This document shows, piece after piece, positions 1-64,000 of a stretch of 64,000 nucleotides of DNA; the first letter of the stretch is position 1, and each line of letters opens with the position of its first letter. The stretch is from Cycas panzhihuaensis (lineage: Eukaryota; Plantae; Cycadophyta), in the NCBI GenBank assembly GCA_023213395.1, contig CM041465.1:70687741-70751740 (forward strand), read 5' to 3'. The notes under the pieces were generated by a model. It saw only the letters and a list, made by a program, of their open reading frames with translations. It searched no databases and was not told the origin of the DNA. Both the position numbers and the translations under genes were made by a program.

Positions 1-2369
1 CACTTTATCAGCCTATGACGACTCACAGCGGGGGCATTCCTTGGCGAATGCTATACTCTGTATGGCGCACAGCCACCCACGTTGTCTCCACGGTCTCCCG
101 GGATGTTTCCGTCAGTCCTGTTTGCTCCCGTTACAACATGTTACTTACATTGCAGTCCTTCCTAAGCTTGATTTAATCCTTAGTTAGGACTCTTTTCATT
201 ATTTTGGGCACTTGCCCATTACCTGGGTATTCCCCCAGCTACACCAGCTCTTTTTTTATCTTGATTTTTACTTCAAAACCTCATGTTTCTACTTCTTTTT
301 CTCTTTTTTTGTTTCCAGTCTAATCATCAGTAAACTTAGCTGCATCATGTCTTTGCTACAAGATCAGAGAGTTTATCACAGATTTGACTGTTTGAAATTG
401 AACAAAAGAGAACCACGCGACAATTTCCATTTTTTTTGTGGAACTGTTGTGTGGCGTCGATTGATTCGAGTCACCTTGACATCCCCAATGTTCACCTGCT
501 GTGAATAGGGGGATAAAGGGGATTTTGCTCCCCATTCTCAAGATCTTTTGGCCAAATTTCTGACTTTTCAACAAGAAAACACACAGAGAAAGACAATCTA
601 CATGCACAGGAACTTGACTCAGGAGAAAAGGGCTGCTACCAGTTGGATTTGCAGGGCCATTGCTGCCCCTCTGACTCTCACAAAGAAGCCTCATACTTCT
701 CTGCAAGGGCTCAAGTTTCCAAAGAACATTTCTACCCAAAAGCTTCTCCAAAGAGCCAACTTCCAAGGCTCTAAGTTTGCAAGGATTTTTCCTCATTTCA
801 CTCTTGCAAAAACCTGTCATGATCAGCCCTCACACATTAGTTATTGCTGTTGTTTCCTAACAGCAAAGCTCATGCTTGATTCTCTTCTTACAAGGTATTT
901 CTTGTTCCTACTTGCAATTCATTTTGTTCTTATTTTTTTGTCTGTTAATGAATGAAATCTTGGTTCGTCTAGTTTTCTTTATGTTGTTGCACTAAATTAG
1001 TGATATTCCCCCAATGTTCTTTTGGAGGCCTCACTATTTTCCTTAAACCATCTCTTTTACCCCTTCCTTGGTTAGCCGGTGCAAAGGAGCAAAATACAAG
1101 GATTTGAAGGAGGTAAGCAGGGTTCCGTCCCCCATTACTGTCCTTCTCCCCAAGGGTTCCGTCCCTTGTCCTCTTTCCCTTTGCCATTAGTGCTTTCTTA
1201 GGGAATGGGCTAAGGGAGTTTAGGGAATTTAGTTGTGGTATCCAAGTTAGCATAGGCAACCCGTCACTACGTCATTGCCAGAAGTCTCATCTGTTGGTGT
1301 TGGGCCCTACCTAAGCCCCAATTTTTTCTGTTATTCCTTTCCTTGTTATAGTTCGTTGCTTCATGACTTTGTGGCCAACTCGTTCCTCCTTCCCGAGTTC
1401 CGTGGAGGTCTTCCGTGGGTGAGTTAGCCATCCCGAGGCTATACTCTTTTCCCTTTCGAGTGTCTTTGTGGTGTATGGTGGTGAGAGTATTTCTTGTATG
1501 TTGCTATTTCATTTGGCTATATTTCGATGCTTAGCATAGATCTTAGTTCCATTTGATTTTAGTACATATATTTTGGTATATTTCGTGGCCTCTCTTCCAA
1601 AAGGAAGGTATTCTTCTCATTTATCTGCAGGATCGTGCGTTAGTGGAGCGATACGTGGAACAAACGCGTTGCAGGTTAGTTCCCCATGTAGTGCATTTCT
1701 TTTCTGTTTCACGCTTTTATTTCTTTTTTCCATTTATTCATTTTCACATGCTTAAGGGGAGGTAAGTAAGCCCCTCTTCTATCGCTTTTGGCAACTGCCA
1801 CCGATCGACATCGCATGCACGACGAACAGAGTAGAAAGGAGCGGGACTTAAAGAAATGAGCAGCACTCCATTCAGGCGCCGGATCCAGGTATTCTCCTTG
1901 TTTCCCATGTATCCCCTTTTACATTGCTACCTTTCATACATTTGCTTATGTAGTTAGGAAATTGTAAAATATTAAAAGGGAAAAAGGAAAAGTGCACTCA
2001 TTTTTACATTATCTCTTGCTTTAGCTAGCGTAGCATAGCGTAGTTAGCTTGTTTGCGTTGCATTCGAGTTACCCTTATTGCGCCCCCTTGTTGCATTTGC
2101 CTGTACGTTAGTTATCCGCTCTTTCGTTCGTTGCCTTCTCATTACCTTAAGGAGATGCAACGTGCAAGGTGCTCTCTCCTCTTTCTGGCCATTTGAGGGG
2201 TAGGAAGGCCTTGCTTTGCATGGCTACCTAGAAGCAACCAGGCACCTTACAGTTCTGAATCCTCTGGCACACAGACGCCCTGCGAGGTGAAGTCCTTGCT
2301 GCCTAGTTTAGTTAGCATTACATATTCTTATATCCTTTTTACTAGATGTAGGGACATCGCCCCGCAACG
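1..2369 (+). mobile_element. Probable 3' end of a Gypsy-like LTR retrotransposon (3' UTR plus a ~1.9 kb LTR at 445-2369)
   Basis: GC-richer non-coding block. TGTTGTGTGGCG at 445 is a 10/12 match to the reverse complement of CGCCCCGCAACA, the expected form of the CGCCCCGCAACG terminus at 2369. It is preceded by a T-run plus GTGGAAC (PPT-like). No protein domain is seen, so the superfamily is a guess. Confidence 0.4.
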
Positions 2370-3073
2370 AGCATTTCAGTTGAGATAAATGAGATAATGG
2401 TGATTCATATCTAATATATTAGATATGTGACAACAATATTTTGAAGGCTAAAATTTTGATAGGTTAGCAGTGCGGTTTCCTCTCTAAACTTCCTTGGGGG
2501 GTTCTAAGGGGGGCGAGAGCCCCCCTTGGCTGGGGGTGCGGGGGATGCTAGAACCCCCCTTGTAAAGAGAGGGTTCGGGAATGATAGACCCTGACCCAAA
2601 AAGCTATCACTGAAAAATATACTAAATTATAAAGAGAATCGAGGTTGTTTGCTCAAAATACCCTAGATTCTATGGTCAAGATTTGTGCTTTGTATGACTA
2701 TCTCATATAGCTTGATTTAGGGTGTTTTTTCATTATGTTGATGGTGTTTGATGTATTGGATGTATTGTGAAGAGTTGGGTAACTAGTTGTTGTTGCTGTG
2801 AGCATTTTACTATAGATTATGTATATTTCTCCATTCTTTGATAATAAAGATTGATACCTTTCCAGTGTGGATGTTTCCCTAGCACACTATTAGGGTTTTA
2901 CCACATTACATCGAGTGTATATGTGATACGTTAGTTTTTTAATTCATTTTATTATATTATCTCTAGTTTAAGAACTTTCATGTTAAATTTTAGTTTTGAT
3001 TCTTATAACTAGTTACAAAATTATTTAGATCTTGGTGACGAGTTCAGGTTATTGGGACCTTGTCTTCTCAACA
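2370..3073 (+). mobile_element. Truncated/solo LTR, same family as 47005-47673
   Basis: Ends ...TCTTCTCAACA. Colinear blocks are shared with 47220-47673 (ggctaaaattttga; cttccttgggg; gatgtttcccta; gttacaaaat..agatcttgg). G/C-run stem-loop at 2495-2560. Confidence 0.55.
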
Positions 3074-4549
3074 TAATAATGCACACTTTTCTATTGTGGA
3101 TAAATTTTAGTTAGCCCTAAAAGGAAGAGCAAACTACCCTCAACTAGTCCAACCACAATCATCTCAAAAGGAGGTTATAATCTACATCGATGTCAAGGAC
3201 TACAATGTCATTGAGGATAGTTTTATCCTCGAGGATAATGTCAGAGGCACTGATGCTCTTTGGGATCAAAGGTGATGACATGTTAGTTAGTGGGCAGGAT
3301 GTTAATTATATGGATGGGGGCTTCTTTATGCCTTAAGGTAAGATGTCCATCATGGAGTTCTCGCTAAAGGATAAATGAAGACAAATAGAGGTATAAAAGG
3401 AGAATTTCTTAAAATGATTTAAGTATTTATAAAAAAGGAATAATTGAAGGATGTAAGCCTTTGACAAGTTTTAATATTATCTAAATTACCTAAAGTTTAG
3501 ATGAATGTAATATATACAATCTCTAAGTGCATAGTTGTTAGGTAGTATCCTTTATACTTGTATATTCCTCATATGTGAGGGCAAGAAGTTTAATATTCCA
3601 ACTTTGTTACATTCACTCATCTTAAAGAATGTTGAGGCATGGGTTGCAATAGAAGGTAATTGAATAATTACTATTATACATCCTAATTTAATCCACCAAG
3701 TGATAGATTATTCTAGGAAAGGAAGAGAAGAAAATTAGATAGTAAAACTATGAAATAAAGCCAAATTATTATAGGAGGCTTCCTTAAATCATTATAAGAG
3801 GAAAATAAGAAGCAAGCTGGACAAATTACCAAGTTGTGACGAGAAGTAGAATACCTTAAATTAAAGTTAAGGGTAAACCAAATGGAGCAAAGGAGGCACA
3901 TAATTTGCTTAAAGACTAAGACAGCATGCTTGCATAGATTCAAAGAAAGAAGGCCAAGAAGATACAAGCCTTGATTTTGAAATTGGATGAAGAATTATAA
4001 GATTTGAAGAAGAAATTGGTAGTAAAACAAGAATTAGTAACATCTTCAGTCTCTAATGGAGATAGAGGGTATAAACTATAGCATTGAAATTGAGATCTTT
4101 CAGGACAAGTGGCCCCCCTATGAATAAGTCTTAGGATTCATTAGAAGGCATTTAGGAGATTTATGATGAGGATGACAAAGTTCTTTCAGTAGAGATGTTC
4201 CTTTGATGAGACTTTCAGGACCCAAAACAAGGTAAGTTAAATATTCTTTTAGGGAATATCCATATATAGTATTTGAGGTCAATTTAGGTTGTTAATGCAA
4301 TTATATGGTAAGGAACCATACAAAGGTAATTTTATTACATTTTCTAGATTAGAATTTATATTTTCATTTAGTAATTGTATTATATTTCTTTTTACCATTT
4401 GCAAGTCTATGTTCCTAGTTTGACACCACAAGTTCTAAGGTTTTCACTTAGAAAACCCATCACAAATATATGCAAAAGAATATTCAAATAATTGATAGAT
4501 ACTAAGAAAATCAAAATACAATATCATTTGTTTGATATTTATTAACCCA

Positions 4550-6130
4550 TCAGTGTTAGGCATTAATGACTTCAACCCCATCCATTCAAACCACTACCTC
4601 ATCATCGTGAAGCTTCAATGGATTCAACATCCTATATTAAGAAAAAAAATGCAGTAATCAAGAGAAAAAGTAGATAGGACAATGAGATATTATGAGACAA
4701 GGATCATGAAGAAGTAATTGTGTTATGATTTTAGAGAGGGTGAAGAAGTATAGTTAACATGGATGTAAGGATGATTCTTATATAAACAATATGAAAAGGA
4801 AGAACGTAGAGTTATTGGATAGTGTTTGGTAATGAAATAAAGTGGGGAGAAAGATGATGTAATAGAGTGCAATTTGTCTTTTTGATATATATTTGTATTC
4901 AAATGGATCTCAGATGCCATATTGGGTGTTCTTAAAGATGTTTTACCTGTGACTCCTATTAAATGATGGGTGAAATAGTTTTAGGCATGTTACATACTTT
5001 TATTATATTCCTTTATAACTTGTTGAGGTACAAAATAGCCACCATTCTTAGGCTTAATAAAATTTAGAAAAGCTTTTATGCAAGGGATGGGTGTAGAAAG
5101 AACATTCACTTTTGTGGAACATTAGCTCAACTGAGAAGAAACGAGCATTTTTATGGATCCCCGCATAGAATGGTTTGCTTTTAATGTTGAACCTTGTAAA
5201 AATTGTGATTCATATTGATCATTGATTATGCCTTTTATGGTGAGTAAGAAATTACAATACATCTATTTAAGACACAAAATACTAATTGTCAAATATGGTT
5301 TTGGATTTAGAATAATGTTTCTCCTTTTATTGCTCCTTTAGATTCTGAAATTATTTTCCTAATTGATTATCATATCTTTAATAAGGATTCTATCAAATAT
5401 TAGCATTTATATAGAATAAAATGTTTGTGGATAATTTAGAAATATATCAATGAATTAATGTTTGAGAGAAGTCATGAATTTAAATCATTCGATGATACTA
5501 TTAAAATTATCGCTCTACTACTTATATAGATGCATGTGGTAGTGTAAGCTCATATTGTTGAAACAAATATGTTAAAGTATCTCTTCTCCAATGTCAATTC
5601 TCTTATGGGTCATCCTATTGGTGGTGCAAATAAAGTGAGCAAAAATTACACCCTCTCTTAATATTTTCATGAAGTCATTAGCCATACTTCATTAAACATC
5701 TATCGTCTTATTTTAAAATTCAATAGAGGGACTCATTTTGCTCATTGTAATTCTTGATGAAGTTACATGGTCTAATACTTTGCCACGTTTGACTAACATT
5801 GCAAAATGTGCTAAATCTCCACAAGGATTAAAATGTACCGATTCAAGGTTTTGGTTTAGAGAAAATTAGTTGATATCCTCCCCATGCTACCAACATTAGC
5901 AAATTCGAATGGTTGTGGCTTTTTTAACACATTTGATTTTTCTCTTCTTTGTTGTGACATATTGAACTATTTACTGAAGCATAGTAAATTTGGTAAAATT
6001 TAAGTTGCCTTTGGTCATCCTTTTGGCATTTATTAGTTGTGTCTAATATAATTCAACCCATAAATAATGTTTAATATTTTGAAAGTTTTATATGCTTTGA
6101 AGAATTGCCACCAAACTTTTTAAGTGGTAT
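4550..6130 (-). mobile_element. Highly decayed hAT-like transposase remnant
   Basis: Broken minus-strand translation gives WWQFF near 6110 (BED-finger-like), VST..AY near 5560, P(K)EWW near 5045 (hAT dimerisation-like) and an acidic tail near 4600. Many stops; no TIRs identified. Confidence 0.35.
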
Positions 6131-6722: not shown

Positions 6723-8859
6723 TCAAAGGGCGCTGGTGGATCCGTCAACAGCATCCCCATTTCCTTGCAACATCTGCACAACTCTGTTCATGGAGGGTCG
6801 ATCACTCGGTTTGGACTGAATACACCACAATCCCACTTTACTCATTCTTGTTGCTATTTCCTCATCTTCTGCTGATCCACATGATACTCCTCTCAACTTG
6901 CACAATTCTCCACCGTGCAGATGGCGGAAAATCCACTCGGGAAAGTAGAATTGGCTGTTAGAAATACCCAATCCCATATCCATGTTCTTCCTTCCGCCAA
7001 CCATCTCCAATAGCAGCATTCCAAAACTATAAACGTCGGACTTATCTGTTACAGGCCCAAAATTTCTGGACCACATCTCTGGTGCAGCGTAGCCAGGCGT
7101 TCCTCTGGCAGCGGTCATCGATATGTGATCGTTTGTCTTGCTGTAGAGTTTTGCCAGCCCAAAATCAGACACTTTGGGTGACAAATTCTCATCCAGCAGA
7201 ATGTTGTGGGGTTTGATATCCAAGTGAATGATACGCTTCTCGCAGTCCATGTGTAAATATGCAATCCCACGAGCTGCACCCAATGCAATCGAATGTAAAC
7301 GCACCCAGTTGAGTGTATGGCTTGTGTCCTCATAACCTGGAAATATGAACTTCTCCAGGGATCCGTTGGGCATATATTCGTACAGCAGTGCGGCTCGAGA
7401 GCCCTCAAAACAAAACCCCAACAGACGAACCAGGTGAACATGATGAATCCTGCCGATTGTACCCACTTCGTTCATGAATTGCTTCTTACCGTGTCTCGAT
7501 TGATCGAGAAGTTTTGCAGCCACCAGAGTCCCGTTCGAGAGCGCTCCTTTGTACACCACACCAAACCCTCCTTCCCCTAATTTATGCGAAAAGTTGTTGG
7601 TGATCCGCTTGAGTTGAGTGTATGAGTATCTGGTTGGCATCTCGTATGCGTAGTCTTCAAGGAATTTTTCTACCTTACAAACAGACATCCTCGAATTCAC
7701 CGGTTGCATTCCAATTACCTTAATAACGCGGGCAAGCCTCCTATTAGTTGGAGGTTTTCTCCTCCTAAGATAAAATGTTAGAATCAGTACTGCTACTGCG
7801 ATCACCGCAACACCCGCAACGCAGCTACCTGCGTCGTTGAAATGAACTACTTCAAACCTTCTGCCAAACCCAAAAGCCCTATGCAAATAAGAAAGACGGA
7901 TTCTGCCGTGCACAATTAAAATAAATCTAACTAATCTTTATACATTATCTTACCTATTACAGGAATAATTTTTGATCGATCTGTAACGCGTCCATCAGAA
8001 ATGTGAGCATCCGGTAAATTAAGATGATTCCACACAAGTTGTCAGTGGCATAGACATATATGCAAGAAACGTAGAACCTCAAATTAATAACCAAATCGAT
8101 CGATGTTTCGGGAACCTTACCATGGGAGCATTTCTTCCCATTCGAGCCGTCCTCGCAATAGCAAATAAATTCATCGCCGCTCGAAGTGTTATAACCGCAT
8201 GTTCCTCCGCTCGAATGGCATTCGTTACAATTTTGATTTTCATCAAAATTCAACATTACTTCAAATCCCCGTCGTAGCTGGGAAAGCAAATCGCTGGGCA
8301 AAGGGCTGATTAAACTCCTATTAATAGGCACTTGGCCATGTATTTTACACCCTGACTCACCCAAACCCTCCAATGGATCCAAAAAGTAGTACCAACTGCT
8401 GTTGCAAGACAATTTGGAAAATGAGGACCTGTTTGCTAGGGAATCGCAGAGGCTGAAAAAGGTTATGTTCTTGGCGTATTGATCAGAAATTATAAAGGCA
8501 GTGGTGTCCGAGAGGTCAATGAAATAATCCGATGGATTGCAATCTCCTTCGTTGGCCACATCCTTAACAATTGTAATGGGCCCAGGGGAAGGAAACCCCA
8601 ATTGTTTGGGCTGCAGTATGCTGTAGTTATTACCACCGATGGGGAGTAGCGGACGATTGTCGACACAATACACCTGAAATTGTCGGTCACCGCAGCCATA
8701 CTTCCCTATAACTCCAAAAGGATCTGAGATATTTGTATCGCCACAGGTGGTATTCTGGGGGCAATACTCGTAGGAAGAGTCTGCGTGGGAAATTGTGAGG
8801 GAGAGGGAGAGGGAGAGCGCGGAGAAGACGATAGAGAAGTGGATCGGCGGGCGAGACAT
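6723..8859 (-). CDS. LRK10L-type (rust resistance kinase Lr10-like) receptor-like Ser/Thr kinase with GUB_WAK/WAK-association ectodomain; exons 8859-8121, 7980-7954, 7828-6723; 623 aa as written
   Basis: ATG at 8859, signal peptide (MSRPPIHFSIVFSALSLSLSLTISHADS) and Cys-rich ectodomain (CGDTNISDPF, CG..QF...C, LRRGFEV, CNECHSSGGTCGY, FICYC). Two phase-1 GT-AG introns (8120-7981, 7953-7829) join in frame to a TM segment (VAGVAVIAVAVLILTFYL-RRRK) and a full kinase: PTRYSY, LGEGGFGVVYKG, VAAK, EVGTIGRIHHVHLVRLLG, HLDIKPHNILLD (non-RD), DFGLAK, GTPGYAAPE, DVYSFG, WCIQ..P..RPSM. Confidence 0.92.
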
Positions 8860-9028
8860 GGAGGGAGGTGGATGATAAACGAGAAGCTGTCTCTCAATCC
8901 GCAGAGGGGAGGGGAAGCAGAGTTGTTGTGAATCACAGTCACTCAAAACAAATATCGCAGAATAACGCGGAATGGGGTTATGCGAAAGTGCTGGGTAATG
9001 AAGTTTCGGGGGAGGACACAGAAGGGAG

Positions 9029-9106
9029 TGACGTGAGGGAGACGACGTTGAATTCCATGGTCATAAAACAATTGACCCCACGTTACGTGGGCGCGCCTTT
9101 GGTCAA
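9029..9106 (-). promoter_or_regulatory. Proximal promoter cluster: TGACG, two inverted W-boxes and an ACGT palindrome
   Basis: TGACG at 9029-9033, TTGACC at 9072-9077, CCCACGT-T-ACGTGGG, GGTCAA at 9101-9106. The cluster lies 170-250 bp upstream of the kinase ATG and is retained in the duplicate at ~31000-31080. Confidence 0.45.
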
Positions 9107-9643
9107 CCTTTTTTTTGTGTGTACGTATATTTTTTAATTTTTTATTAATAAGTAATTAGCGACAACCACTCATGTGATTGCTTTATTATTTTTTGGGTTT
9201 TTCAGTATGTATATATATTTTCTTGTAGGAGGGTGATTATAGGTGTAAAGAATTAATGTTTGTTCTTAGTCATAAATTGGTAGAATGAAATTAATTAAAA
9301 AATAAATGAAATATAAAAATAATTAATAATAGTAATTAAAATGAATAATTTATTTCATTTTGATTATAAATTAATTTAAAAAATTAATATTTATTATGTA
9401 TTTTTAATATTAATTATTTGTTATTATATATTTCTTATAAATTATATAATAGTAATTATTTAATATTTTTAATAATTATTTATTATTAATTATGTAGTAT
9501 AAAAATAATTAATAGGGTTTAATGTGATAATGGATTAACATGAGAATAGATAGAAATTATATATTCAACACTTAGAGTAGTTAACTAGTCAACTTTGTCT
9601 TGCTTTGATTTTTCCATCTTTTGGTATCTAGAACAACTCACTT

Positions 9644-28664: not shown

Positions 28665-30095
28665 GTAACAATGTTCTTATAAGTTAGAGGTAGAGAAAAT
28701 TGTAATGACTTGATTACTACAAGAAATAAACTAGCCTTTTAAGTTATGTATAACATATATACTAATAGTTGAAAGATAGACAATATCATCCTAATGGATG
28801 TAAGGAGATGTTATGGATCCTTCCTCTAAGAGGATGTAGATAGATTAAAATGATCACCCATCATAGAGGATGCAAAGATTTAACTATCTCCACAAATGTA
28901 GAGAGAAGTAAAGGATCAATCGGAGCTATTTCTTGCAATCTAGGAGCTTCATAGCCATTACACTAATAATTAAGTGAAGATATATACTTATTACTTTCTA
29001 GATTAGTTTAGATTAGCTTACCTTAGTTTGTTTACATGTACATGCTCTTATTCTCTTGTTGGTTTGTTACATGAATGTGTTTATTTTTAGTCAATAATAA
29101 TTATGACCATGGTTGGTGGCTTTATGATTATCCAATTGCTTAATGAGTTAAAGAAAGGCCTCTTAGTACCTCTACGAGACATGTGCCATCCTTCTCTTCC
29201 TTTCGTGTATAGCATTAATATATCTTACCTTCTTGTTTGGACCTTTTTTCATTAAAAGCTTTTATTTTTTAATGTTTTTCTTATTTTGATCATCATGATT
29301 GTTATAATCTTACTTTGGTTTTTTATTTTGCTTTTGCAAAAATCCTATTTGTAGCCTACCATAAAATTTACTATAATACTATAAAGAACTATGTGGTACT
29401 AATTCTTTGACTTCAATTTTTTTTGGCCTATGGGAGGCCATGCATTTATGGTGCCTACCTACAGACCAACTTCCTTTTCCCATTAAAACCATAGGCTTCC
29501 CATGAGTTTGGTTTTAAAACCATGGCTAATTAATACCTCTAGCATTAATTTTTCCTAAAACCATGGGTAATTAGCCCATGGTATTCCTCTAACCTATGAG
29601 CCCAAAGCCATGGGCCTTAGCCCCTTCATCTTTCTATTTATACCCCCCCCCCCCTCCCCACCTTTCATTAGAAAGGGGAGGTCAATTTTTGAACTATTAT
29701 GCTATTAAAATCTATGTAGAAACCTCATAACTTTTAAATTTGATTAGTTGACTTCCACTCTTGGCTCAAGGCTTAAACACTTGATATTATTTGATCACTC
29801 TTTGACTAGAGTAGATTGTCACTAATGTCTCTCCTTCACTCAAAATAAGAAAAACATCTCCTATATTGCAAGGATTTTCATCCTTCATTTAAGGCTTTGT
29901 TTCTTTACTTTTTAGTATTAAATTATCCCCCTTTATGCTTGCTTTTATCTTGGTTTTAATCCTCCTATTCTTTATGATTCACTCTCTTTGACTGATAGTG
30001 TCTTATAGAATAAAGGATGGCCTATATTACTCATTTAGGTTTAGAAAATGGTGGTCAATCTTCCATTTCTAAGGCCCCTCTCTCAATCCGGAGAG

Positions 30096-30831
30096 GGGAG
30101 CATTTCTTCGAATTTGCGCCATCCTCGCAATAGCAAATAAATTCATCGCCACTCGAAGGGTTGTAACAGCATGTTCCTCCACTCGAATAACATTCCTTAC
30201 AACTTTGATTTTCATCAAAATTCAACATTACTTCAAATCCCCGTCGTAGCTGGGAAAGTAAATCGCTGGGCAAAGGGCTCGTTAAACTCCTGTTAATAGG
30301 CACTTGGCCATGTATTTTACACGCTGACTCACCCAAACCCTCCAATGGATCCAAAAAGTAGTACCAACTGCTATTGCAAGATAATTTGGAAAATGAGGAC
30401 CAGTTTGCTAAGGAATCGCAGAGGCTGAAAAAGGTTATGTTCTTGGCATATTGGTCAGAAATTGTAAAGGCAGTGGTGTTCGAGAGGTCAGTGAAATAAT
30501 CCGATGGGTTGCAATCTCCTTCGTCAGTCACATCCTTAACCATTGTAATGGGCCCATGGGAAGGAAACCCCAATTGCTTGGGCTACTGTATGCTGTAGTT
30601 ATTTCCACCGATAGGAAGTAGTGGAACATTGTCGACACAATACACCTGAAATTGTGGGTGACCACATCTATACTTCCCTATAACTCCAAAAGGATATGAG
30701 ATATTTGTATCACCACAGCTGGTATTCTGGGGGTAATACTCATAGGAAGAGTCTACACGGGAAATTGTGAGGGAGAGGGAGAGGGAGAGCGCGGAGAAGA
30801 TGATAGAGAAGTGGATCCGTGGGCGAGACGT
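30096..30831 (-). pseudogene. Exon-1-only pseudogene copy of the LRK10L kinase
   Basis: ~92% identical to 8124-8859. Start codon ATG>ACG (30829-31), CAG>TAG stop at 30583-85, first Cys>Tyr (EYYPQ). Truncated 3 nt before the exon 1 donor; no TM or kinase follows. Confidence 0.93.
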
Positions 30832-31614
30832 GGAGGGAGGTGGATGATAAACGAGAAGCTGTCTCTCAATCCGGAGAGGGGAGGGGAAGCATAGTTGTTG
30901 TGAATCACAGTCACTCAAAACAAATATTGCAGAATAACGCGGAATGGGGTTATGCGAAAGTGCTGGGTAATGAAGTTTCGGGGGAGGACACAGAAGGGAG
31001 TGACGTGAGGGAGACGACGTTGAATTCCATGGTCATAAAACAATTGACCCCACGTTACGTGGGCGCGCCCCTTTGGTCAACCTTTTTTGTGTGTATATAT
31101 ATTTTTTTATTAATAATTAATAAGTAATTAGCGACAACCACTCATGTGATTGCTTTATTATTTTTTGGGTTTTTCAGTATGTATATATATTTTCTTGTAG
31201 GAGGGTGATTATAGGTGTAAAGAATTAATGTTTGCTCTTAGTCATAAATTGGTAGAATGAAATTAATTAAAAAATAAATGAAATATAAAAATAATTAATA
31301 ATAGTAATTAAAATGAATAATTTATTTCATTTTGATTATAAATTAATTTAAAAAATTAATATTTATTATGTATTTTTAGTATTAATTATTTACTATTATA
31401 TATTTCTTATAAATTATATACTAGTAATTATTTAATATTTTTAATAATTATTTATTATTAATTATTTAGTATAAAAAATAATTAAGGGTTTAATGTGATA
31501 ATGGATTAACATGAGAAGAGATAGAAATTATATATTCAACACTTAGAGTAGTTAACTAGTCAACTTTGTCTTGCTTTGATTTTTCCATCTTTTGGTATTT
31601 AGAACAACTCACTT
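30096..31614. repeat. 1.5 kb segmental duplicate of 8124-9643 (exon 1, 5' UTR and promoter)
   Basis: Colinear alignment from GGGAGCATTTCTT to GAACAACTCACTT in both copies. Confidence 0.95.
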
Positions 31615-38900: not shown

Positions 38901-41900
38901 ATAAGTCTAAATTAGAGGGTGAATGAGTGAATCCATGCTATATGAAAAGTCATCAATCTTAGTATACCAAGCATGTGGTGCCTACTTCAGTCTATATAAG
39001 GATTTATTAAGCTTGTAGACTAGGTTCTTTAGACCAAAGATACCGGGAGGTTGCTTTAAGGAAATCACTTCTATAAGCTCCCATTCAAGAAAGCACTTTT
39101 CACATCCATTTGGTACATAGGCCAGTTGAATTGAGCTATAAGTGACATAACTGAATGAAATATGGTCATGTTAGAAACTAGTCCAAAGGTTTCATCATAG
39201 TCAATCCCCTTTTGTTGTTTAAAACCTCTTATAACTAGGCACGATTTGTGATGTTCAATGGTGCCATTGATATAAAATTTTATCTTGTAAAGCCATCTAT
39301 AATTACTTAACTTCTTTCCAGGTGCTAGTTCTACTAGCCCTCGCATGTTATTCTTAAGAATAGAGTTTATCTCTTCATCTATTATAACTTTCCATATTTG
39401 GTCTTTGACTACCTCCTTAAATGTAGAAGACTTATAAGTCTTAAAGACAAGAGCCATTATAGAAAAGTTGGTGGAGTGTCTCATTTTAGACTCTCTTTTG
39501 GAAGTTATAGGAGGAGAAGTTGCATCCTTTATCAATTGTTATAACCATTTAGGAGATTTTCAAAAGCTAGTGACCTCCACCTAAAGATCATTAGGAGATA
39601 TAAGTGGCATTACTGTGGTAGCATCTAACGGTATGTTAAAGCTACTAGAATTGAAGGTGAACTTGTTGTATAAGAGGATGTGGGTGTTGGTGGCTCAAGA
39701 ATTGGTATAAGAGGCACCTCAAGTATCGACATCTTTATATATTACAAATTAAATTTGTGAAGGGTCAAAGTCTTGAGTATTTTGAGCAAATATGACATCT
39801 CTAGTGGTATATACCTAGTTTCTAATAATCTCATATACTTTATAGGCTTTATATCTAGGTGCATAGCTAATAAATATGCATTATAGGCTTTTATCATCTA
39901 GTTTCTTTCTATTATCCTTAGGAATGAATTTGTAGGTTATACAACTAAATGTCCTTAGGTGAGAAACTATAGGCTTTTGGCCTAACCAAGCCTCCTTATG
40001 AATGATATCTCTATCTACTACTATGGTACTTTTATTAGTCAGATAAGCAATAGTTGATATGGCTTTAACCCAAAACTAAGTAGCAAGGTTAGTAATACTC
40101 AACATGGCTTTTACCTTGTTCACCAATATTTGGTTCATTCTTTCTACTACATCATTTTGTTGAGATGTATGTGGGGCAAAAATTGAGCGTTTGATTCTAT
40201 ATTATTTATAAAAGTTAGTGAATTGATTAGATATGTACTCTCCTCCATTATTAAATGTAAGCACCTTGATGTTCATACCACTTTCATTTTCCACCTCATC
40301 CTTAAATACTTTAAACTTGACAAAGTCTTAAAATTTATTCCTAAGAAAGTAGACCCATACTTTTCTAGAATAGTCATCAATAAAGGTCATGAAAATAGAT
40401 TCACATTGAGTGAAAGAACTGATATGGGCCTACAAATATCTAAGTGGACTAATCCCAATGGTTATTAGGCTTGCCATACTATTTTTTATGGGAATCATTC
40501 TCTATGTTGCTTGCCAACTAAGCAAGCCTCATAAATACATCTATTTCTCCTAAGCTTTGGTAATCTATGCATCACATGTAGCTTATACATGAGGTTTAAA
40601 CTCTATCTATTTAGGTGACCAAGGCATCAGTGCCATAGTTAGTCCTTAGTACTATTAGAGGTGGATTTCTCTTTAGAATATGAGAATTCACGTTAAACTT
40701 AGTTAAGAGGTAGGTCTTCAACTATGATTGCTTTCCCCTTGTCAAGGTGATTATTTTATATTATGGAATAGTACTCTTGTGGTGGAGTAATAGTGAGGGG
40801 AACTCTATCAAGTTTGTATAATCCATTATCCTTATGTCATGTGACAACCAATTGACCTATGGCATGATTTGTAATTATGCAGATACTTTAGGTAAAGAGA
40901 ATATTTACGTTCTGTTTATTAATTTGACTAATTTATAATAGATTCATTTTCATATTAGGTACATGGAATATATTATTGATATATTGGCAGATGTTTTAAT
41001 CCTTTAGTATAATAGGGACTCGCCTAATCTTAGTCACATCATATATAATATTATCTCCAAATATTATAGTTTAGGCCCTTATTAGTTATGTCTCCTTAAA
41101 TAAGTCTTTCGTACTAATCATATGATGTATAGCACTAGAATTGATCAATTAAGAATTATCAAGATGTTGAGATGATAAGGTAATAAAGAATAAATTTTAA
41201 GAGGTAGATTGAGTATCATCCATATTGCCTTCTTGTAGTGAATTCTAATTATTCCTTAGGTTTCTTTCTTGGTACCTTTGTTTGTTTACTTGACACTAGT
41301 TCTAGTTCGCCTCTAGTTCTAGCTTTGTTAAAAGTTTGGGCCTCCTTATTACCTACTATGGTTCTAAAGTAGTTATATGTTAGCTTATCTTCTTCTACAA
41401 TCAACTACTAGGTGCCCATTTTACCACAAGACATGTAGGTGACATTTTATCTATGTTGTTGGTTTCTTGAAGGTTGAGATTGTTGTTGTTGTTATGGGTA
41501 TTATAGTTGTTGGGGCTATTGATATATAGTGTCAAACTATTGAGTATGAGGTTGTTGATAAGTTGGCTACTAACATGGTTATTAAGAGATATTTGAAGAG
41601 TTAAACTGATAAGTAAGGATTTACTAATAAGTTGATCGCTTACTTGGTTGTTAGGGTGGCTTGTTCCTTTTTGAAATCTTAATTGTAAATGCAAAGTAGT
41701 AAAAATGGATGCGAGTGGTTAGTGATTGAGTATATTGTCCTCCCGAGCAAGAGTCCTTCTAAAGTATTAAATTCTATTTTAGGAAAGGCATCATAAAGTT
41801 TAGATACAAAGCTATTATATTCTATAGAAAGGATATTAATGACACTTAACACTGAATCATGGTTAGAAGGGGGTTCATTAAGGATAATAAGTTATTTTCT

Positions 41901-44900: not shown

Positions 44901-45586
44901 AATTCCTCAAAGGTGATTTTAAAGTTTGTTGATTAATTTTAGAGGTATTTAAGGTCACCCATATGAGAAGAGATGTCATGCACCTAGTTGTGGATGTTTG
45001 TTAGCCCTCTATTAACATGTAATAACCAATTGGAGAGTGCAAAGCCCTAATGAGTAATTTCAATACCCATAGTATTTAATATTACCAATAAATATAAGGT
45101 ATGTTCATATGTTTTAAAGTATTATTCGTCGATGATGAAGTATTTATGTCTACATGTTGTATTTAGCATGTGTGTATGTTTTAGTCACCTGTAATGATGT
45201 GTTGGTTAATATTAGTCACTCGCTTGAAATATTTTAGCCATGAAGCTTTAATATAGTCACCTCAGTATATTCATTCAATCACATTTAATATAATATTTGA
45301 TCATATTCATATATAATTGATGGCTATTAATGATTACAACCAACTAAATTTGTTCATCGCCCACATATATATATTGTGTTTAATGTCACCCATGTTAAGA
45401 AATATTGCAGTCACTTTGATCTCATATATAATGCCTCCCTTTTTTATATATGTCGCTACAAATGCCTGTGTAATATTTAATCACAGTTTTACCATTTTTG
45501 TCGTTGATATTTTTGAATGTCATTTGTAATATATATATATATGGATGGTTGTAATATATTTACGTTCCCATTTTACATATTACAAC

Positions 45587-46707
<1,121 letters not shown>

Positions 46708-47004
46708 TGGTTTTAATTAATATTTCCAAGGTTTGCAATAATTATTGATAGTTTATTTCATTACATAATCAGATATTAATTGAAATTACTTACATTGATA
46801 TATTATTATTTTTGTCAATATTATTTGATACCAAGTCACCAACATATATTTAGCTACAATTGATTTTATCCATTTACTTTTATTTATCAAGTTTCCTTTA
46901 ATAATTATGAGACACCTTTTCACTAAGGTTTGATCACCATTTTTTTCATAATATGTTGTTTTCTTATATGAAATCATCTCTTTATGGTATTTCATTTTTA
47001 TTAA

Positions 47005-57700: not shown

Positions 57701-59789
57701 TGTTGAGAAGGATATCGATGTATCCGAGGAGCATGGTCCATCTACCATCGCTTTGCCTTTGTCAACTCTATTATTCTTAAATGGTGGTGCATGATGTGTA
57801 CTCATTAGTTGAGAGTCATAGCTACCATCCTCTGTAACTCTATTATCAGATTCCAATAGTTTGAGTAACTCTTGAGTGTTCCTCCCCCCCCACCCCTTGC
57901 CAAGTTTTAGAATCTATACATCATATTGAGTAACATCATAATAATGGTTATTTGGTAATTTAGAGTCTAATTGTAATAATTGATCTTCTATTTCAGTAAA
58001 CACCACATCTCTAGTAATGATAATCTTCTACTATAAAGGTATTAAAAACTTGTACCCTTTCCTGTCCATGGGTATCCAACAAAGATGCCTTTAAGTGGCC
58101 TAGCCTAGAGTTTATTTCTATCTCCATCTAATATATGGGCATAATATATTAAGATAAATATTTTGAATTGGTGGTAGTGAGGGTCTCCGTCACACTTTTC
58201 ATTAGAGAAGTTCCTCCTTTAGATGGGTCACAACATTCATACAATAAATAATCGCCTAAATTGCCTCGCCCATAAGTGAGAAGGTACACTTTATAAACCA
58301 ATATAGATCAAGCCATATTCATAATAGACCTATTCATGTGCTCGACAATTTATTCTATTAGTGGGTGCCTACTATTGTAGTATGATGCTTGATGTCATTA
58401 TCTTATAGATAGGATTCAAACTCAAGAGAGGTATATTCTCCACCATTATATGTTTGGAGACACTTAATCTAATAACTGACTTTTCAAAGTAGCTTTAAAA
58501 GCTTTAAAGACACTAAATGCCTCATCTTTCTTAATGTAAAATTCACCCACACTTTCCTAGTAAAATCATTAATGAAGGATATGTAATATAATTTCATTAA
58601 TGATGAAATGGGCATTGGTCCACATAGATCAGAGTATACCAATTGAAGAGGATGACTTGATTTCCACTAACTATCAATAAAGGGCTATCTATAATATTTG
58701 ACTATGATACATGCTTCATATTTTAAGGGCTTGGAGAAGAACTTGGGTAGACCTGGAAGGGTATGACAAAGATCACTAAGTTGATTTATATGAACATGGC
58801 CCACGCGAGTATGCAAAAGATCTTCTAAAGACAACTTAAGGTGTGTCAAAGTGGTATTAAAAGCAAAGTCTTTATCAATACAACATATGCAATATTATGA
58901 TAAGCCAATAGATGTAATACTAATTATTTAGACACTCGAGATCTATAAATATAGATTAAAGTCTAAACTATATACAACATTAGATTTCTTTAAAATGTAA
59001 ATAATATAATTTTGGGGTTTTACCGAGAGGGTTTCCATCTCAATTCTAATGTCTTATGTGCTTTCATTCTATTGAAATCTAATTTGTGTGAAAGATTCTA
59101 TCGACCGCTTGCATATAGGTGTTTCCTAAGAGTTTCTCAATAGAACTTATAAATAAATAGATAAATGCACATAAACTTTCTTCGATACCATGCCAAATTG
59201 ATTAACATGATCACTATTATAAATTTGCATGCATATATATCAAACTAAAAGTAGGAAACATAAATAAATACATTAAATGTGTTTGTAATACCAATTCCAT
59301 TAGCCCTATATAAACTCTCTCTATCTTTTGTATTTTATATTAGAGTTATAACACCTTGATATGTGTGCCACCTTTAAGTAGTCCAATGGGGTTCTCTCAC
59401 TAGTGGTGAGCTTGTACTATAACTATATACTATTCTTTGCTCATAATTGTGTTTTGGCCAATTCTCCAACATGGTGTCTATTTTATACATACTTCATCTT
59501 TTTATTGCTCACCATTAGGGTTTGATATGCTTATTACATTCCTAATTCTAACATGGTATCAAAGCCCAAGGTTCAATCTTTAGAGGCATTTCTTGTAAAC
59601 CCTAGAACATGTTATCCTTGTTTTTAGCTTTCAAGTCTTGTAAATTTTTTATGTATTTTTATGACTTTGTCAAGTTGAAGATCATTTCAAGTTACATCTT
59701 ATGCATATTTTGCTATGGGACCTATCAAGTTTTGAAGGTTATTTTTATGTTTATGAGAGGTTGTTTCAAGCCTATTTTGAAGTTTTGTA

Positions 59790-59950
59790 GTTGTTTGAAG
59801 CATGTTGATGTCGCCAAGTGGATATCTTCTCCACATATAGTCACAATAAATGTGCATGCAGGTAAAAGTCCACAAAAGGTCATGTTTAGATTCCAATTAT
59901 TAGAAGACCATCTCCATTGCATGTCAATGGATAAGAATGCAATCAAGATT
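59790..59950 (-). pseudogene. Possible captured PLS-PPR fragment in G
   Basis: NMTFCGLLPAC....CGEDIH (ORF 59725-59946) resembles the PPR L-motif xTFxxLLxAC...GxxIH. Confidence 0.45.
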
Positions 59951-60392
59951 ATTGATAGTAGTTGAGAGAGTCCTTCTTAGCTAGAGTGACTTTATTTTGA
60001 TTTTTTTTTTTTAATCAGATCTATAGGTGGATAAAGGTCATGTTCCTTTCTACTAATATGTACCACTTTATGTGAAAATATTCAAAAAAAATATTCTATA
60101 TTTTGGCCTATGCTCTTATGTATTTTTTTTCAAAAAAAAAGGGAGTCTACCAAATTTGGAGTTCTAGATGAAGTTCTCAACTCTATGTCTGTTACAAATG
60201 AACACTTCTAGACTACTCTTGGTTCCAGTAATTCTTTTGCACTCCGAAAGTGAGCACCAATCCTAATAACTTCATTTCAGTCGCCATTATTATATTGCTT
60301 ACACTTCAAATATTTTTTACTATTTCGCACCTTAAAGGCTTGGCCTTGCGATTCAAGCCCTTGTTAATGGTCCGAATTCATCGATCAATCTA

Positions 60393-60830
60393 ATGGCCAC
60401 CACCAAGAGTACTTAGACCGTGATGTTATGTTTAGAAAATCAAGGCCAAGGTTGATAATAAGATGTGCTTGACTCAATGCAAAAATATGAGTTGGACTTC
60501 TATGACGTATAAGGTGTTTATTTGCCTTGATTATTCAAATGATGCATCGAGTCTTCGCGTTCATATTAGTTTTGTTACTGACAAACCTGGACACATGGAC
60601 ATTAGAATAGTTGAAAGTGATGGTTTTTGGTGGTAATGGACGTGCACAGATTTTCTCAAGCAACATGGTTGGATAGATGGTGGGAAGATTGAATCTAAAT
60701 ATACTTTAAGAGCAGTTGAGCTATATAGGCATCTTCTTGTCAAAGAAGTAAATAAGAGCATTAATGGTATCATTTCTTCATCACATGCATTACCTAATTC
60801 TCCTCAAAGCGTGTTGGTCCCATGGATGGT
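60393..60830 (+). pseudogene. Captured, apparently processed ArfGAP (AGD8/9/10-like, Glo3-type) 5' coding region; putative 5' UTR from ~60220
   Basis: With small frameshifts it reads DRDVMFRK.KAKVDNKMC...NAK..SWTSMTYKVFICLDYS..H.SLRVHISFV..TNLDTWTLE*LKVMVFGGNGRAQI..KQHGWIDGGKIESKYTLRAVELYRHLLVKEVNKS, the whole ArfGAP domain with no intervening sequence. Confidence 0.92.
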
Positions 60831-62851
60831 ATATGAATGCAAAAGCTTCTTAACAGGTCAGATCCTCACCATGGCTCCTCAAATACTTAACGACGACAAT
60901 TTAGAGATTCGACGACAACAATACACAGCGTCGTCATGTACGTCGACTTACATCCTAGGTAATGCCGTGGAAGAGGGCGCCACCATCGACAAAACTCCGC
61001 AAACTCTCTATAAATTCAGTGAGACCGCAAATTGACTTCAATGATGCACACCTTCTCCACTAATGACCTTCAAAATACCAAATGGCAAAGGGCCCTCTCA
61101 ATGGTGCATAAACCTAATAGGGTTTATTTTAAATTAATATTTTATTTTAGCGTATGATGTTTTAAACGTGCGAATGCGAATTATTATTAAAAGGGGTTAT
61201 TTTTTTTCAATTTAAAAAAATTAATTAAATCATATTAGATAATAGTTTCGAGTCTGATTAGCCCCCATCCACTTAGCCCCCAAGTCATATGCAGCATTTA
61301 TATGACCTCCAGCTCATAGTAAAAGGGGCTAATTCCTATTTTCAACTTTTTTTTAGGAGTACCTGTCACTTTTTTTACTATATCTTGAGATTGGGAGGTA
61401 TGATTTTAGTCCCGTCTGTTGTGTTGGATCCATGTAGAGACCTTTTAATTTGGTAGGTCATTTGACATATATTTGGAGTAGTTTCATGGAGATTTTTTCT
61501 TTTCATTCAAAGTCATACATTCCCACTTATCTTCATTGTTTCTCAGCTTCTATAGGCACATATTGTATTTTTTAGGCTTCTTGATGTAATGTACCCTAAA
61601 TGCGGGGGATATCATGTACTATGGATTTATTCTTGGATCTTGAAGAACCCATTGTGATCATATTATACTTCATTTATGAGAGAAATTCATATGTGCTACA
61701 TAAGTTACACATCATTTTTCAATCATGTAAGAATTTTTAATGCTGGTTATTTTTTGCCCATGGTGGTAAGTCGATAGCCCAGTGAGGCATCTTTTTAGCC
61801 TATATGGCATGTTTGAGGCCATAGTTCCATTGTATTTCTAGCCAATAGATGCCAAAGAAGTGCTAGTCCTATTGAGAAAGAGGTAGGACACATTTTTAGA
61901 AACTACTCTTGCCTGCCATGTGCTTCTTATATATATATATATATATATTCCTACTTACACTCCCATATGAGAAAGGGGTGGGATCTTATTCAACTACTCT
62001 TGCCAACTCCTGATTAATCCACATATACAAAGGGAGTTCCTAACCAACTGGCAGTTGCAGCAGCTAATAACCCATGCATTCTGGTAGATGGACTCCACTT
62101 TATATGGACTTCAAGAATTTCTTATTCGTGCGGCGCTTATGATCTAGTAGACTTTTGGAGACTTGAGCTTATCATTGATATGATGACATTTATGTAATTG
62201 ACTATTACAAGGGGGAATGTTAGTGTAATACTCCAATTCCATTAGCCCTATGTAAACTCTCTCTATCTTTTGTATTTTATATTAGAGTTGTGGGTCAATT
62301 GATATGTGTGCCACCTCAAAGTAGTCCAATGGGGTTCTCTCACTAGTGTGAGCTTGTACTATAAGTATGTACTATTCTTTATTCATAATTGAGTTTTGGC
62401 TAATTCTCCAATATGGTATCTATTTTGTACATACTTCATCTTTTATCAAGCCACCATTATGGTTTGATATGCTTACATTACTAATTTAATAAAATGTATG
62501 TAAATATCTTACAAATAAGTGTGATTTATAAATTAATTATACCATGCATATAAATTTTGGTAGAGCTTCTACATACACCATAATTCATCATACAATAATG
62601 GGATAGTACTTAATATATAAGTATTCAAAACCCAAATATAGAAATATGATTAACTGATATAATGGGCCAATATTATTGGCTCATTATTTGGAAATTAAAT
62701 GGACCTAACTACATTATGAATTATATTTAAATTACAAATAAGGGTTTAAACCTAATATTACATATGATACATAATAATGTTATAAAAGTATATAATATAT
62801 AATTACATATTAGAAATATATTACAAAGAGCTATTGCAAGTTATTTAAATA

Positions 62852-64000
62852 GATATATTCTGATATGGTATAAGAGATAATTAAAAATTCTAATATGGTA
62901 TCAAAGCCATGGTGAAGTATTAGAGATCAGGTTAAGAGCCATGGTTGCAAGCCTATACAGAGCCAGTTGACGAGTCAGTACAAAGCTAGTATATAAGTTA
63001 GTTTTAATGACTATTTAAAGAGTGAAGACTCCATTATGCTAGTGATATATGATGAATAATTTAGAGTATGATGAAGATATTAAGAGCTACATATAGAAGA
63101 TTAAGTCACATGAAGATGAATATAATAAAACTAATGGGTATATTGATTATTAAATTTATTGTAGATGTTTATATTATGCATGTAACACATATTCAATAAA
63201 CATGCAAGTTTGAAACTAGTCCACCAAATATGATCTGATGAGGAGAATTATTGCCAGTTGCATTTACTAATATAAATCGAATTTCTATAGAAATTATTAA
63301 GATCTAGTGAAGACCAACCATCCCACTAAACCTTATAATTAGCAACAACAAGATCATATTACATAAGTGATAATGACATCTCTTACCTAGATTTTAATCA
63401 TGGATTTTTTAATTTACATTTTGCTGATGGATTTTCTTCCAATTAATGGTATTTTTGTAATAGTTTGTTGTTGAGAGATAACAACAAAAATAAGATTGAT
63501 ATGAAGACATGAGAAGCAAATCAGTGAGAAGCAAGCTAATAACCCTATTAGAGTGAAATAAGTAGCAACATATACAAATGATATACGACGATGAATTTTT
63601 TTTATAAATAAGCTTTATTAATTTATTGCATGGTAAGTTAGTATTCAAATAAGGGATTCAACCTTAGTTAAGTGTGTAGATTCTTATGATTGTTAAGCAT
63701 AAAAATAAATTAAGGTTTGCAACTAAGGTTTATTAGAATATAGATTGAGTGTGAGAGCATAACCTAAGCTTGTGTATATTATAGGCCACAAGAAGGTATA
63801 CATTCTAATACTATGAGATATTATGGTATCAATTTAGGGATTTTCATATAAAAAGAATATTAATATAACTTGCAAAGGATACAAATCATTTGATGCTTTC
63901 TTATAGAAGATCATTAATGAATATGTGACTACCATTTAGAATGATGAAATTAGAGATACCACAGCACATCATGGGCCATCCTATATAATCCTTTCATAAT
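62852..64000 (+). mobile_element. Element I: end of 5' LTR, PBS and decayed gag of an older Copia element whose LTR was split by C (left part lies before 37452)
   Basis: ...AATTCTAATA followed by PBS TGGTATCAAAGCC at 62896; DEENYC(Q) gag-like start near 63235. Left LTR boundary not resolved. Confidence 0.6.

Follow-up and report, generated by a model that had tools for sequence, protein, structure and literature searches.

The interior of an LTR element that we call G, which occupies positions 59280–62491 (3,212 bp) of the 64-kb stretch of DNA analysed here (the window), probably contains a sense copy, derived from cDNA, of the 5′ portion of a host mRNA of the AGD8/9/10 class of ArfGAPs, acquired through LTR-mediated retroposition. 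The element itself is an LTR retrotransposon of old age, non-autonomous and inactive, in which nothing is functional now. Below we describe the boundaries and coding content of G, the identity and decay of its ArfGAP cargo, and the conserved intron positions that bear on the route by which the cargo was acquired, before weighing other origins and setting the element beside published cases of gene capture by retrotransposons.

Structure and classification of element G

The outer limits of G are set by a direct repeat on the + strand, formed by a 5′ LTR at 59280–59553 (274 bp, TG..CA; the motif ctatataaa, at approximately 59306–59314, is TATA-like) and a 3′ LTR at 62218–62491 (274 bp, TG..TA). 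The two LTRs are 87–91% identical, depending on the treatment of gaps, with a K2P distance of 0.096. Direct reading of the sequence places a PBS, tggtatcaaagc, at 59554–59565, abutting the 5′ LTR; it is of the tRNA-iMet type, one base off the plant tRNA-iMet complement. A PPT, acaagggggaa, abuts the 3′ LTR at 62207–62217. The same five bases, AAATG, are read immediately outside each LTR (59275–59279 and 62492–62496), constituting a TSD within the 4–6 bp range. These features (terminal direct repeats, PBS, PPT, and TSD) are the structural hallmarks of an LTR retrotransposon, and the LTR pair, PBS, PPT and matching 5-bp TSD together delimit a single insertion unit. Each part of the outline given by an earlier sequence-only reading of the region, namely a 3.2-kb element with two 274-bp LTRs, the TSD AAATG, a PBS, a PPT and no gag/pol, was found again in our analysis.

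Between the PBS and the PPT, the + strand carries a leader or other interior sequence without coding similarity (59566–60392, assessed by Pfam and shuffle-tested alignment), followed by a decayed, intron-free copy of ArfGAP mRNA covering codons 1 to approximately 143 (60393–60822, with the 3′ limit approximate and lying within 60803–60845), and then by the rest of the interior, in which neither gag/pol nor similarity to ArfGAP cDNA was detected by Pfam, tblastx/blastn or alignment (60823–62206). Outside the ArfGAP region, ten segments of 45 aa or longer are free of stops; none of them matched any Pfam entry at E ≤ 1, and coding capacity for gag, protease, integrase and RT/RNase H was likewise not detected by Pfam and tblastx, as is characteristic of a non-autonomous element. 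When the interior was compared with the rest of the window, including its other retroelements (tblastx, blastn), only a (TA)n run was matched, and G showed no similarity to the window's copia-like RVT_2 remnant or to the other elements. No second copy of the G family lies inside the 64-kb window, and there were no Rfam matches in 58500–63500. Repeats within the element are of low complexity throughout.

With regard to classification, the iMet-type PBS and the 5-bp TSD, which are the two features that speak to Copia descent, are compatible with Ty1/Copia yet undiagnostic of it. Membership of that superfamily turns on the order of pol domains, on RT phylogeny or on sequence descent from a Copia family, and Pfam detected no coding domains in the interior outside the ArfGAP region. 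The earlier description of G as TRIM-sized does not hold, as at 3,212 bp the element lies above the published TRIM limit of <1.5 kb (1,500 bp; PMC4717578).

Identity, extent and decay of the ArfGAP cargo

The cargo lies on the + strand, in sense orientation, and comprises the first two exons and the beginning of exon 3 of an AGD8/9/10-class ArfGAP. Similarity searches were run with stop-free pieces of the cargo, and were complemented by a codon-wise read in which each break is marked with an x; the L-numbered plant genomic and transcript contigs used for comparison come from a metagenome scan. Pfam returned an ArfGap match at 60436–60633 (E = 4e-5, 24.1 bits) that falls under the gathering score of 28.7, as expected because the copy is broken. 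A phmmer search of 60637–61032 against 1.8 billion proteins gave 71 matches, all of ArfGAP type (best E = 1.3e-10), and blastn against a conifer-like cDNA contig (L042) gave E = 7e-61 across 60405–60803. The codon-wise read against cDNA extends over codons 1 to approximately 143, that is, the entire ArfGap domain. The sense-strand copy of the whole AGD8/9/10-type domain that had originally been proposed is borne out by the codon-wise read. The AGD8/9/10 (ArfGAP2/3-type) class is marked by the ArfGap zinc-finger domain together with the class stretch FFKQHGW..GGKIE.KYTSRAAELY; the cargo is assigned to it on the Pfam ArfGap match to one piece and on phmmer and tblastn matches that are confined to this class.

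Relative to the L042 cDNA, the cargo is collinear from the ATG at 74.6% nucleotide identity, but is broken by approximately 10 small indels (1–3 nt) and by a single in-frame stop, at codon 75; mutation has also altered some of its zinc-finger cysteines, and the cargo is therefore a pseudogene. Its mismatch spectrum is biased from GC to AT (42 of 64 transitions), a bias that fits a silenced TE. At the 3′ side, a search of 60800–61300 for the downstream part of the cDNA found nothing exceeding shuffles. On the 5′ side, the sequence-only reading had described a UTR-like stretch beginning near 60220, which we could not substantiate: the alignment score to the L042 5′ UTR was reached by 73 of 200 shuffles, and the weak resemblance to that UTR is restricted to about 20 nt directly 5′ of the cargo ATG. 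The copy begins at the start codon, most likely preceded by a short piece of 5′ UTR. A LINE-made processed pseudogene, which would hold the mRNA 3′ end with poly(A) between TSDs of its own and would often be truncated at its 5′ end, was also considered as an identity for the copy and was rejected: the copy is 5′-complete and ends in exon 3, has no poly(A), and is flanked by no repeat other than a low-complexity T-run.

The seven top-scoring proteins against the cargo are all gymnosperm or gymnosperm-like: Ginkgo Gb_31196 (the best), Araucaria, Cryptomeria, and four close relatives of a conifer-like protein (L022). Taxa were not separated when the cargo was ranked against 190 proteins, mostly from angiosperms, but became so once gymnosperm proteins were added. 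The receptor kinase gene of the window, too, is nearest to gymnosperm proteins, and the shared affinity of the two sequences indicates that the cargo is host-derived. For the kinase gene, no protein is more than 70% identical; the GC content of the window is 32%.

The cargo is contiguous at two conserved intron positions

In the eudicot genomic contig L062, the homologous gene is interrupted by intron 1 at 2897–3084 (GT..AG, phase 0), located at ENK|MCFDC, and by intron 2 at 3206–5027 (GT..AG, phase 2), located inside the R codon of FVR|STNLD. Both introns are read in eudicot genomic sequence (L062/L060), and both are retained in a partly spliced transcript (L028). Breaks in predicted proteins fall at the same places: 16 proteins, comprising ORF fragments and gene models, change from unrelated residues to homology at or beside R-STNLD, exactly there in 14 of them; seven gene models begin at xCFDC, including a Taxus partial (P0320) and moss isoforms (P0010/P0312); and exon 1 ends at ENK in models P0042 and P0056. 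Introns near ENK|xCFDC and FVR|STNLD had been proposed in the sequence-only reading; they are confirmed in the eudicot contig, and the breaks in moss, Taxus and other plants agree with them.

At the homologous points in the window, by contrast with the interrupted genes, the copy runs through. The exon 1/exon 2 junction (..DNK|MC..) is contiguous at 60460–60465 on the + strand, at the point homologous to L062 intron 1, and the exon 2/exon 3 junction (..SFV[R S]TNLD..) is contiguous at 60574–60583 on the + strand, at the position of L062 intron 2, with a net loss of 2 nt. The cDNA alignment and the codon-wise read both bear out the contiguity at these two points that had been noted earlier. The 2-nt loss sits exactly at the exon 2/3 junction and is a point against the retroposition history proposed here, though small indels are common across the whole cargo. 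Contiguity at two conserved intron sites argues that the source was spliced RNA, and we regard an RNA-level origin as the best reading of the sequence, with the introns of the parent gene inferred from plants other than the host and, for intron 2, directly from non-gymnosperms only. A host fragment that lacks its parental introns, as judged here from those other plants, is what is expected of retro-transduction.

Proposed origin of the cargo and its alternatives

Template switching within the particle is the textbook model for such capture. Applied to G, RT copying the element's RNA in a virus-like particle would have changed template, moving onto exon 3 of a spliced ArfGAP mRNA packaged alongside it, copied to or near the 5′ end of that mRNA, and then switched back to the element leader. 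The chimeric cDNA would have integrated as a single unit, leaving one TSD, so that capture would have preceded the present insertion; the entire unit has subsequently decayed by neutral, GC-to-AT-biased mutation. From the single TSD-flanked unit alone, we infer that the ArfGAP sequence moved as cargo. Its sense orientation, its 5′-complete and 3′-truncated extent, and the lack of poly(A) favour template switching over a LINE retrocopy, and the overall pattern fits RNA-level capture ending at the mRNA 5′ end.

Three other histories must be weighed against this one. G might have taken up, at the DNA level, an ArfGAP sequence that was already free of introns (a processed pseudogene, a retrogene or an intronless paralogue), whether by recombination, by repair or by read-through transduction. 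Retro-duplicates and captured fragments are reported to abound in gymnosperm genomes (PMC13477047), and the interior flanking the cargo on both sides has no recognised similarity by Pfam or tblastx/blastn, as a DNA-level uptake would allow. We nevertheless consider this origin unlikely: a sense cargo that runs from the 5′ end of the mRNA, or close to it, into exon 3 is the pattern expected of RT switching, and the conservation of both intron positions from moss to eudicots means that an intronless source would itself need to be a retrocopy. Somewhat less probable still, in our assessment, is the entry of an ArfGAP cDNA into the already integrated element, either as a LINE retrocopy or through cDNA capture during double-strand-break repair, in which case it would never have moved as cargo. 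A 13-nt direct repeat, TATTTTTTTTCAA, at 60121–60133 and 61198–61210 does bracket a block of 1,077 bp that includes the cargo and is A-rich on its 3′ side. However, this repeat is a low-complexity T-run in DNA of 32–35% GC, and a chance match is therefore likely; furthermore, poly(A) is absent where the ArfGAP homology stops, the 3′ end of the mRNA is missing, and a 5′-complete, 3′-truncated cargo is the opposite of LINE products.

The LTR pair might, finally, not belong to one element at all, but represent a pair of related solo LTRs, or the product of recombination, bracketing a host ArfGAP processed pseudogene. The single copy seen within the window and the approximately 10% divergence of the LTRs are what such an arrangement could produce, but the PBS directly adjoins the 5′ LTR, the PPT directly adjoins the 3′ LTR, and an identical 5-bp TSD stands on either side, which leaves this arrangement very improbable.

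Beyond the template-switching origin itself, one may speculate that a copia-family RT in this genome repeatedly switches to co-packaged host mRNAs, runs off their capped 5′ ends and returns to the leader, and that G belongs to a lineage that took its cargo along as it expanded after the capture, perhaps as a source of siRNAs directed against the host ArfGAP. We give this wider scenario little chance of being correct; if true, run-off capture would supply a mechanism for the first/second-exon preference in gymnosperm TEs (PMC13477047).

Comparison with known systems

Gene capture by retrotransposons has ample precedent (PMC5131818, PMC4717578, PMC2774510, PMC13477047). The Bs1 element of maize is an LTR element that transduced fragments of host genes (PMC13317346, PMC5131818, PMC4717578). 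In those sources, Bs1 resembles G in being a non-autonomous LTR element with exon-only host-gene fragments inside it that are thought to have been acquired via RNA. According to the same accounts, Bs1 differs in that pieces of three genes are fused in a transcribed and translated ORF, and in being present in 1–5 copies that share switch points, whereas G has one recognised host fragment, broken by a stop and approximately 10 indels, and occurs as a single copy in the window.

Closer in form are the soybean TRIMs with gene cargo, such as GmaRetroS15 (Gao et al. 2016; PMC4717578), which like G are small and pol-less, have 5-bp TSDs and carry intronless runs of spliced exons. Their cargo also includes pieces of 5′ UTR and is approximately 70–76% identical to the host gene (PMC4717578). 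They are, however, only 1.17–1.45 kb long and mostly present in at least two copies, compared with 3.2 kb for G. LTR-mediated retroposition as described by Tan et al. (2016), with Ty1 assays in yeast and 27 rice retrocopies within LTR elements (PMC5131818), offers a further likeness: a partial mRNA copy replaces internal sequence while both LTRs are kept, which yields a chimera with the potential to be a non-autonomous element. That process is defined by microsimilarity at the switch points (PMC5131818), and G is likened to it on the basis of its overall arrangement.

Gymnosperm genomes reportedly contain very many retro-duplicates and captured fragments, the latter numbering approximately 400,000 per genome (PMC13477047). 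The G cargo is a real yet ordinary instance of gene-fragment capture, a process whose great frequency in gymnosperms is already known, and by itself it is a minor addition: another decayed host-gene fragment in a dead LTR element. It has modest value as a clean, junction-resolved example that is spliced, in sense orientation, and begins at the start codon. If many captures in the genome were to share this polarity, they would provide a mechanistic reason for the unexplained first/second-exon bias of TE-captured fragments. The survey of Platycladus orientalis (PMC13477047) parallels G in its gymnosperm-type host, in the old age of its captures, and in the tendency to capture first and second exons, the G cargo consisting of the first two exons and a piece of the third; but whereas that survey is statistical and leaves the spliced junctions of single cases unresolved, G offers one case in which the junctions are resolved.

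Structure and coding capacity of element G

Direct reading of the region 59100–62700, with repeats searched separately, resolves element G as an LTR element at 59280–62491. The 5′ LTR (59280–59553; 274 bp) starts with TG and ends with CA, carries a TATA-like ctatataaa approximately 27 nt in, and is followed directly by a primer binding site, tggtatcaaagc, which we take to be one base off a perfect complement to the plant initiator tRNA-Met 3′ end. The 3′ LTR (62218–62491; 274 bp) ends with TA and is directly preceded by the purine run acaagggggaa. The sequence AAATG stands immediately outside each LTR, and the whole 3,212 bp therefore represents one integration unit. All of the structural features named in an earlier, sequence-only reading (paired 274-bp LTRs, target site duplication, primer binding site, and polypurine tract) can thus be read directly. 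Of 267 aligned sites, 24 differ between the two LTRs, and their alignment has 13 gap columns besides (K2P 0.096); this divergence places the insertion roughly 20 million years ago if we assume the conifer rate used for LTR dating, ~2.2e-9 per site per year.

Across the six frames, 15 segments of ≥45 aa in the interior of G are free of stops. None of the ten that fall outside the ArfGAP region matches Pfam even at E ≤ 1. When the interior was compared by tblastx and sensitive blastn with the rest of the window, where an RVT_2 remnant lies among other repeats, a (TA)n microsatellite was the sole match. G is therefore non-autonomous, with its partner family absent from the window, and the proposed lack of gag/pol holds within these searches. 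The description of G as TRIM-sized does not, as its 3,212 bp exceed the published limit of <1.5 kb (PMC4717578). Its proposed descent from Copia is at most possible, an initiator-tRNA-type primer binding site and a 5 bp target site duplication being compatible with that superfamily but not diagnostic of it. The RVT_2 remnant is a copia-type reverse transcriptase on the minus strand (39071–39535; E 3e-16), unrelated in sequence to G. A long TA-rich, microsatellite-like array with 8–10 bp periodicity occupies 45424–46750 and produces spurious ORFs of ~390 aa in several frames.

Identity and decay of the ArfGAP cargo

Pieces of an ArfGAP domain are spread over three forward frames of 60380–60834; these pieces were searched separately, and a codon-wise reading shows the breaks as x. 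The piece at 60436–60633 matches Pfam ArfGap (E 4e-5), and that at 60637–61032 has 71 phmmer matches among 1.8 billion representative proteins (best E 1.3e-10), every one of them of the FFKQHGW..GGKIE.KYTSRAAELY type. Named full-length relatives are annotated as AGD8, AGD9, AGD10, or ArfGAP2/3, and tblastn of the relatives' proteins onto the window covers residues ~4–145. Together these searches bear out the plus-strand AGD8/9/10-type copy claimed for G.

Gymnosperm ArfGAPs were gathered using the ORF of a metatranscriptome contig, L022, and then added to the ranking against the fragment. With these included, the top seven scores all belong to gymnosperm or gymnosperm-like proteins, headed by Ginkgo Gb_31196: three bear gymnosperm names (Ginkgo, Araucaria, and Cryptomeria), and four are unnamed and close to the conifer-like L022 protein. 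L022 also gives the highest nucleotide identity to the cargo (80% over 233 nt). The cargo is host-derived. L022 itself carries, at 75–6104, a complete symplekin ORF (1,405 aa) fused to a conifer-like ArfGAP ORF that lacks its N-terminus and begins inside exon 2, a join that probably reflects chimeric assembly.

An LRK10L/WAK-type receptor kinase gene on the minus strand of the window (6723–8946; domains GUB_WAK_bind, WAK_assoc, and kinase) is closest to proteins of Pinus taeda, Cryptomeria, Taxus, and Ginkgo (64–70% identity, none higher), and the genome is therefore gymnosperm-like. Part of the kinase ectodomain, with its flank, recurs 21,972 bp away (8124–9643 versus 30096–31614, 93–98% identical, within a second copy region at 30055–31614) in what looks like a local segmental duplication.

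A metagenome scan with the ArfGAP alignment as query, which recovered mostly plant transcripts, supplied a cDNA contig (L042) whose full ArfGAP N-terminus closely resembles the conifer-like protein P0315. It matches the window at 60405–60803 (blast E 7e-61). Aligned globally from the ATG (60393), the two agree at 74.6% of 426 compared sites, with ~ten indels of 1–3 nt, a single in-frame stop (CAG to TAG at codon 75), and no intron-size insertion in the cargo. Among transitions from cDNA to window, 42 of 64 run from G or C to A or T, a bias that would be expected of methylated, silenced DNA. Taken with the whole-window GC of 32% and the gymnosperm-like proteins, this decay suggests a gymnosperm giga-genome that is heavily methylated and has drifted towards AT.

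Similarity to the cDNA ceases at ~60822, and the cargo thus breaks off ~80 codons within exon 3. On the upstream side, an alignment anchored at the ATG agrees with the cDNA 5′ UTR at ~17 of 24 positions, while an unanchored local alignment does no better than shuffles. Some 5′ UTR is likely present in the cargo, but the alignments lend no support to a UTR-like stretch starting at 60220.

Contiguity of the cargo at conserved intron sites

Intron positions were judged from other plants' sequences, namely genomic contigs (L062/L060), a transcript (L028), and fetched proteins. The genomic contigs, which match a legume AGD8-like protein best (97.6% identity in exon 2), have five exons. Exon 1 ends ..tct gaa aat aag before gt.., and exon 2 starts atg tgt ttc gat tgc after ..ttcag, giving a phase 0 intron 1 at ENK/MCFDC; exon 2 ends ..ttc gtg ag before gtaagg, and exon 3 starts g tct aca aat tta gac after ..tatgtag, giving a phase 2 intron 2 inside the R of FVR/STNLD. 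These are exactly the sites named in the sequence-only reading, as seen in another plant rather than in this species' parent gene.

The transcript is partly spliced, retaining both introns with the later ones removed. Sixteen proteins (ORF fragments and gene models, moss-type and angiosperm-type among them) show unrelated residues followed by homology from or next to R-STNLD, 14 of them exactly there. Seven models open with the first amino acid of exon 2. One of them is P0320, a partial model from Taxus chinensis, and two others are P0010 and P0312, alternative isoforms to P0311 from the same Ceratodon gene. In two mis-spliced models, exon 1 terminates at ENK. Intron 1 thus has support in moss, a gymnosperm, and eudicots from the genomic contigs, the transcript, and the protein breakpoints; intron 2 is supported in both angiosperm-type and non-angiosperm-type sequences, a bracket that would include gymnosperms.

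The cargo is contiguous at both points, as had been claimed: aag/atg at 60462/60463 and gtt-actg-aca at ~60577–60580, the latter albeit 2 nt short. This net loss (60574–60583) falls exactly on the exon 2/exon 3 junction and may reflect the general decay of the copy, a variant donor or acceptor site in the parent's splicing, or a reverse transcriptase slip.

Route of capture

The cargo is without the two conserved introns seen in other plants, lies in sense orientation to G, begins at or near the mRNA 5′ end, and ends within an exon, a set of traits that the template-switch model of LTR-mediated retroposition predicts (PMC5131818). Under this model, reverse transcriptase would quit the element RNA for a co-packaged mRNA during minus-strand synthesis, and would have to return from the mRNA by the time its 5′ end was reached. 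LINE products, by comparison, are 3′-complete, polyadenylated, and often 5′-truncated. The cargo has the opposite pattern, with the 5′ end present, a stop inside an exon, and no poly(A) on the ArfGAP fragment, which makes a LINE-made copy unlikely.

The single target site duplication implies that the chimera integrated as one unit, unless the cargo entered G later. Such a secondary arrival is hinted at only by a T-rich direct repeat of 13 nt, TATTTTTTTTCAA, at 60121–60133 and 61198–61210, which flanks a 1,077 bp block with the ArfGAP fragment and is the only candidate footprint of a secondary insertion; the repeat is, however, of low complexity and probably due to chance in DNA of 32–35% GC. 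Less probably, G took up the cargo as DNA, from an ArfGAP copy that had been processed beforehand.

Relation to known gene captures

Whatever the route, G is a further instance of the capture of gene fragments by LTR elements, which is already well documented. Gymnosperms are reported to hold ~400,000 captured coding fragments per genome, favouring first and second exons for reasons stated to be unknown (PMC13477047). In maize, 425 intact LTR elements with gene fragments derive from at least 189 captures (PMC2774510), and Bs1 is the classic case of gene fragments inside an LTR element, as described in PMC13317346. LTR-element-flanked retrocopies are known across animals, yeast, and rice (PMC5131818), and the cargo of soybean TRIMs is exon-only, examples being the spliced run of exons 5–9 from a casein kinase gene and a piece of 5′ UTR (PMC4717578).
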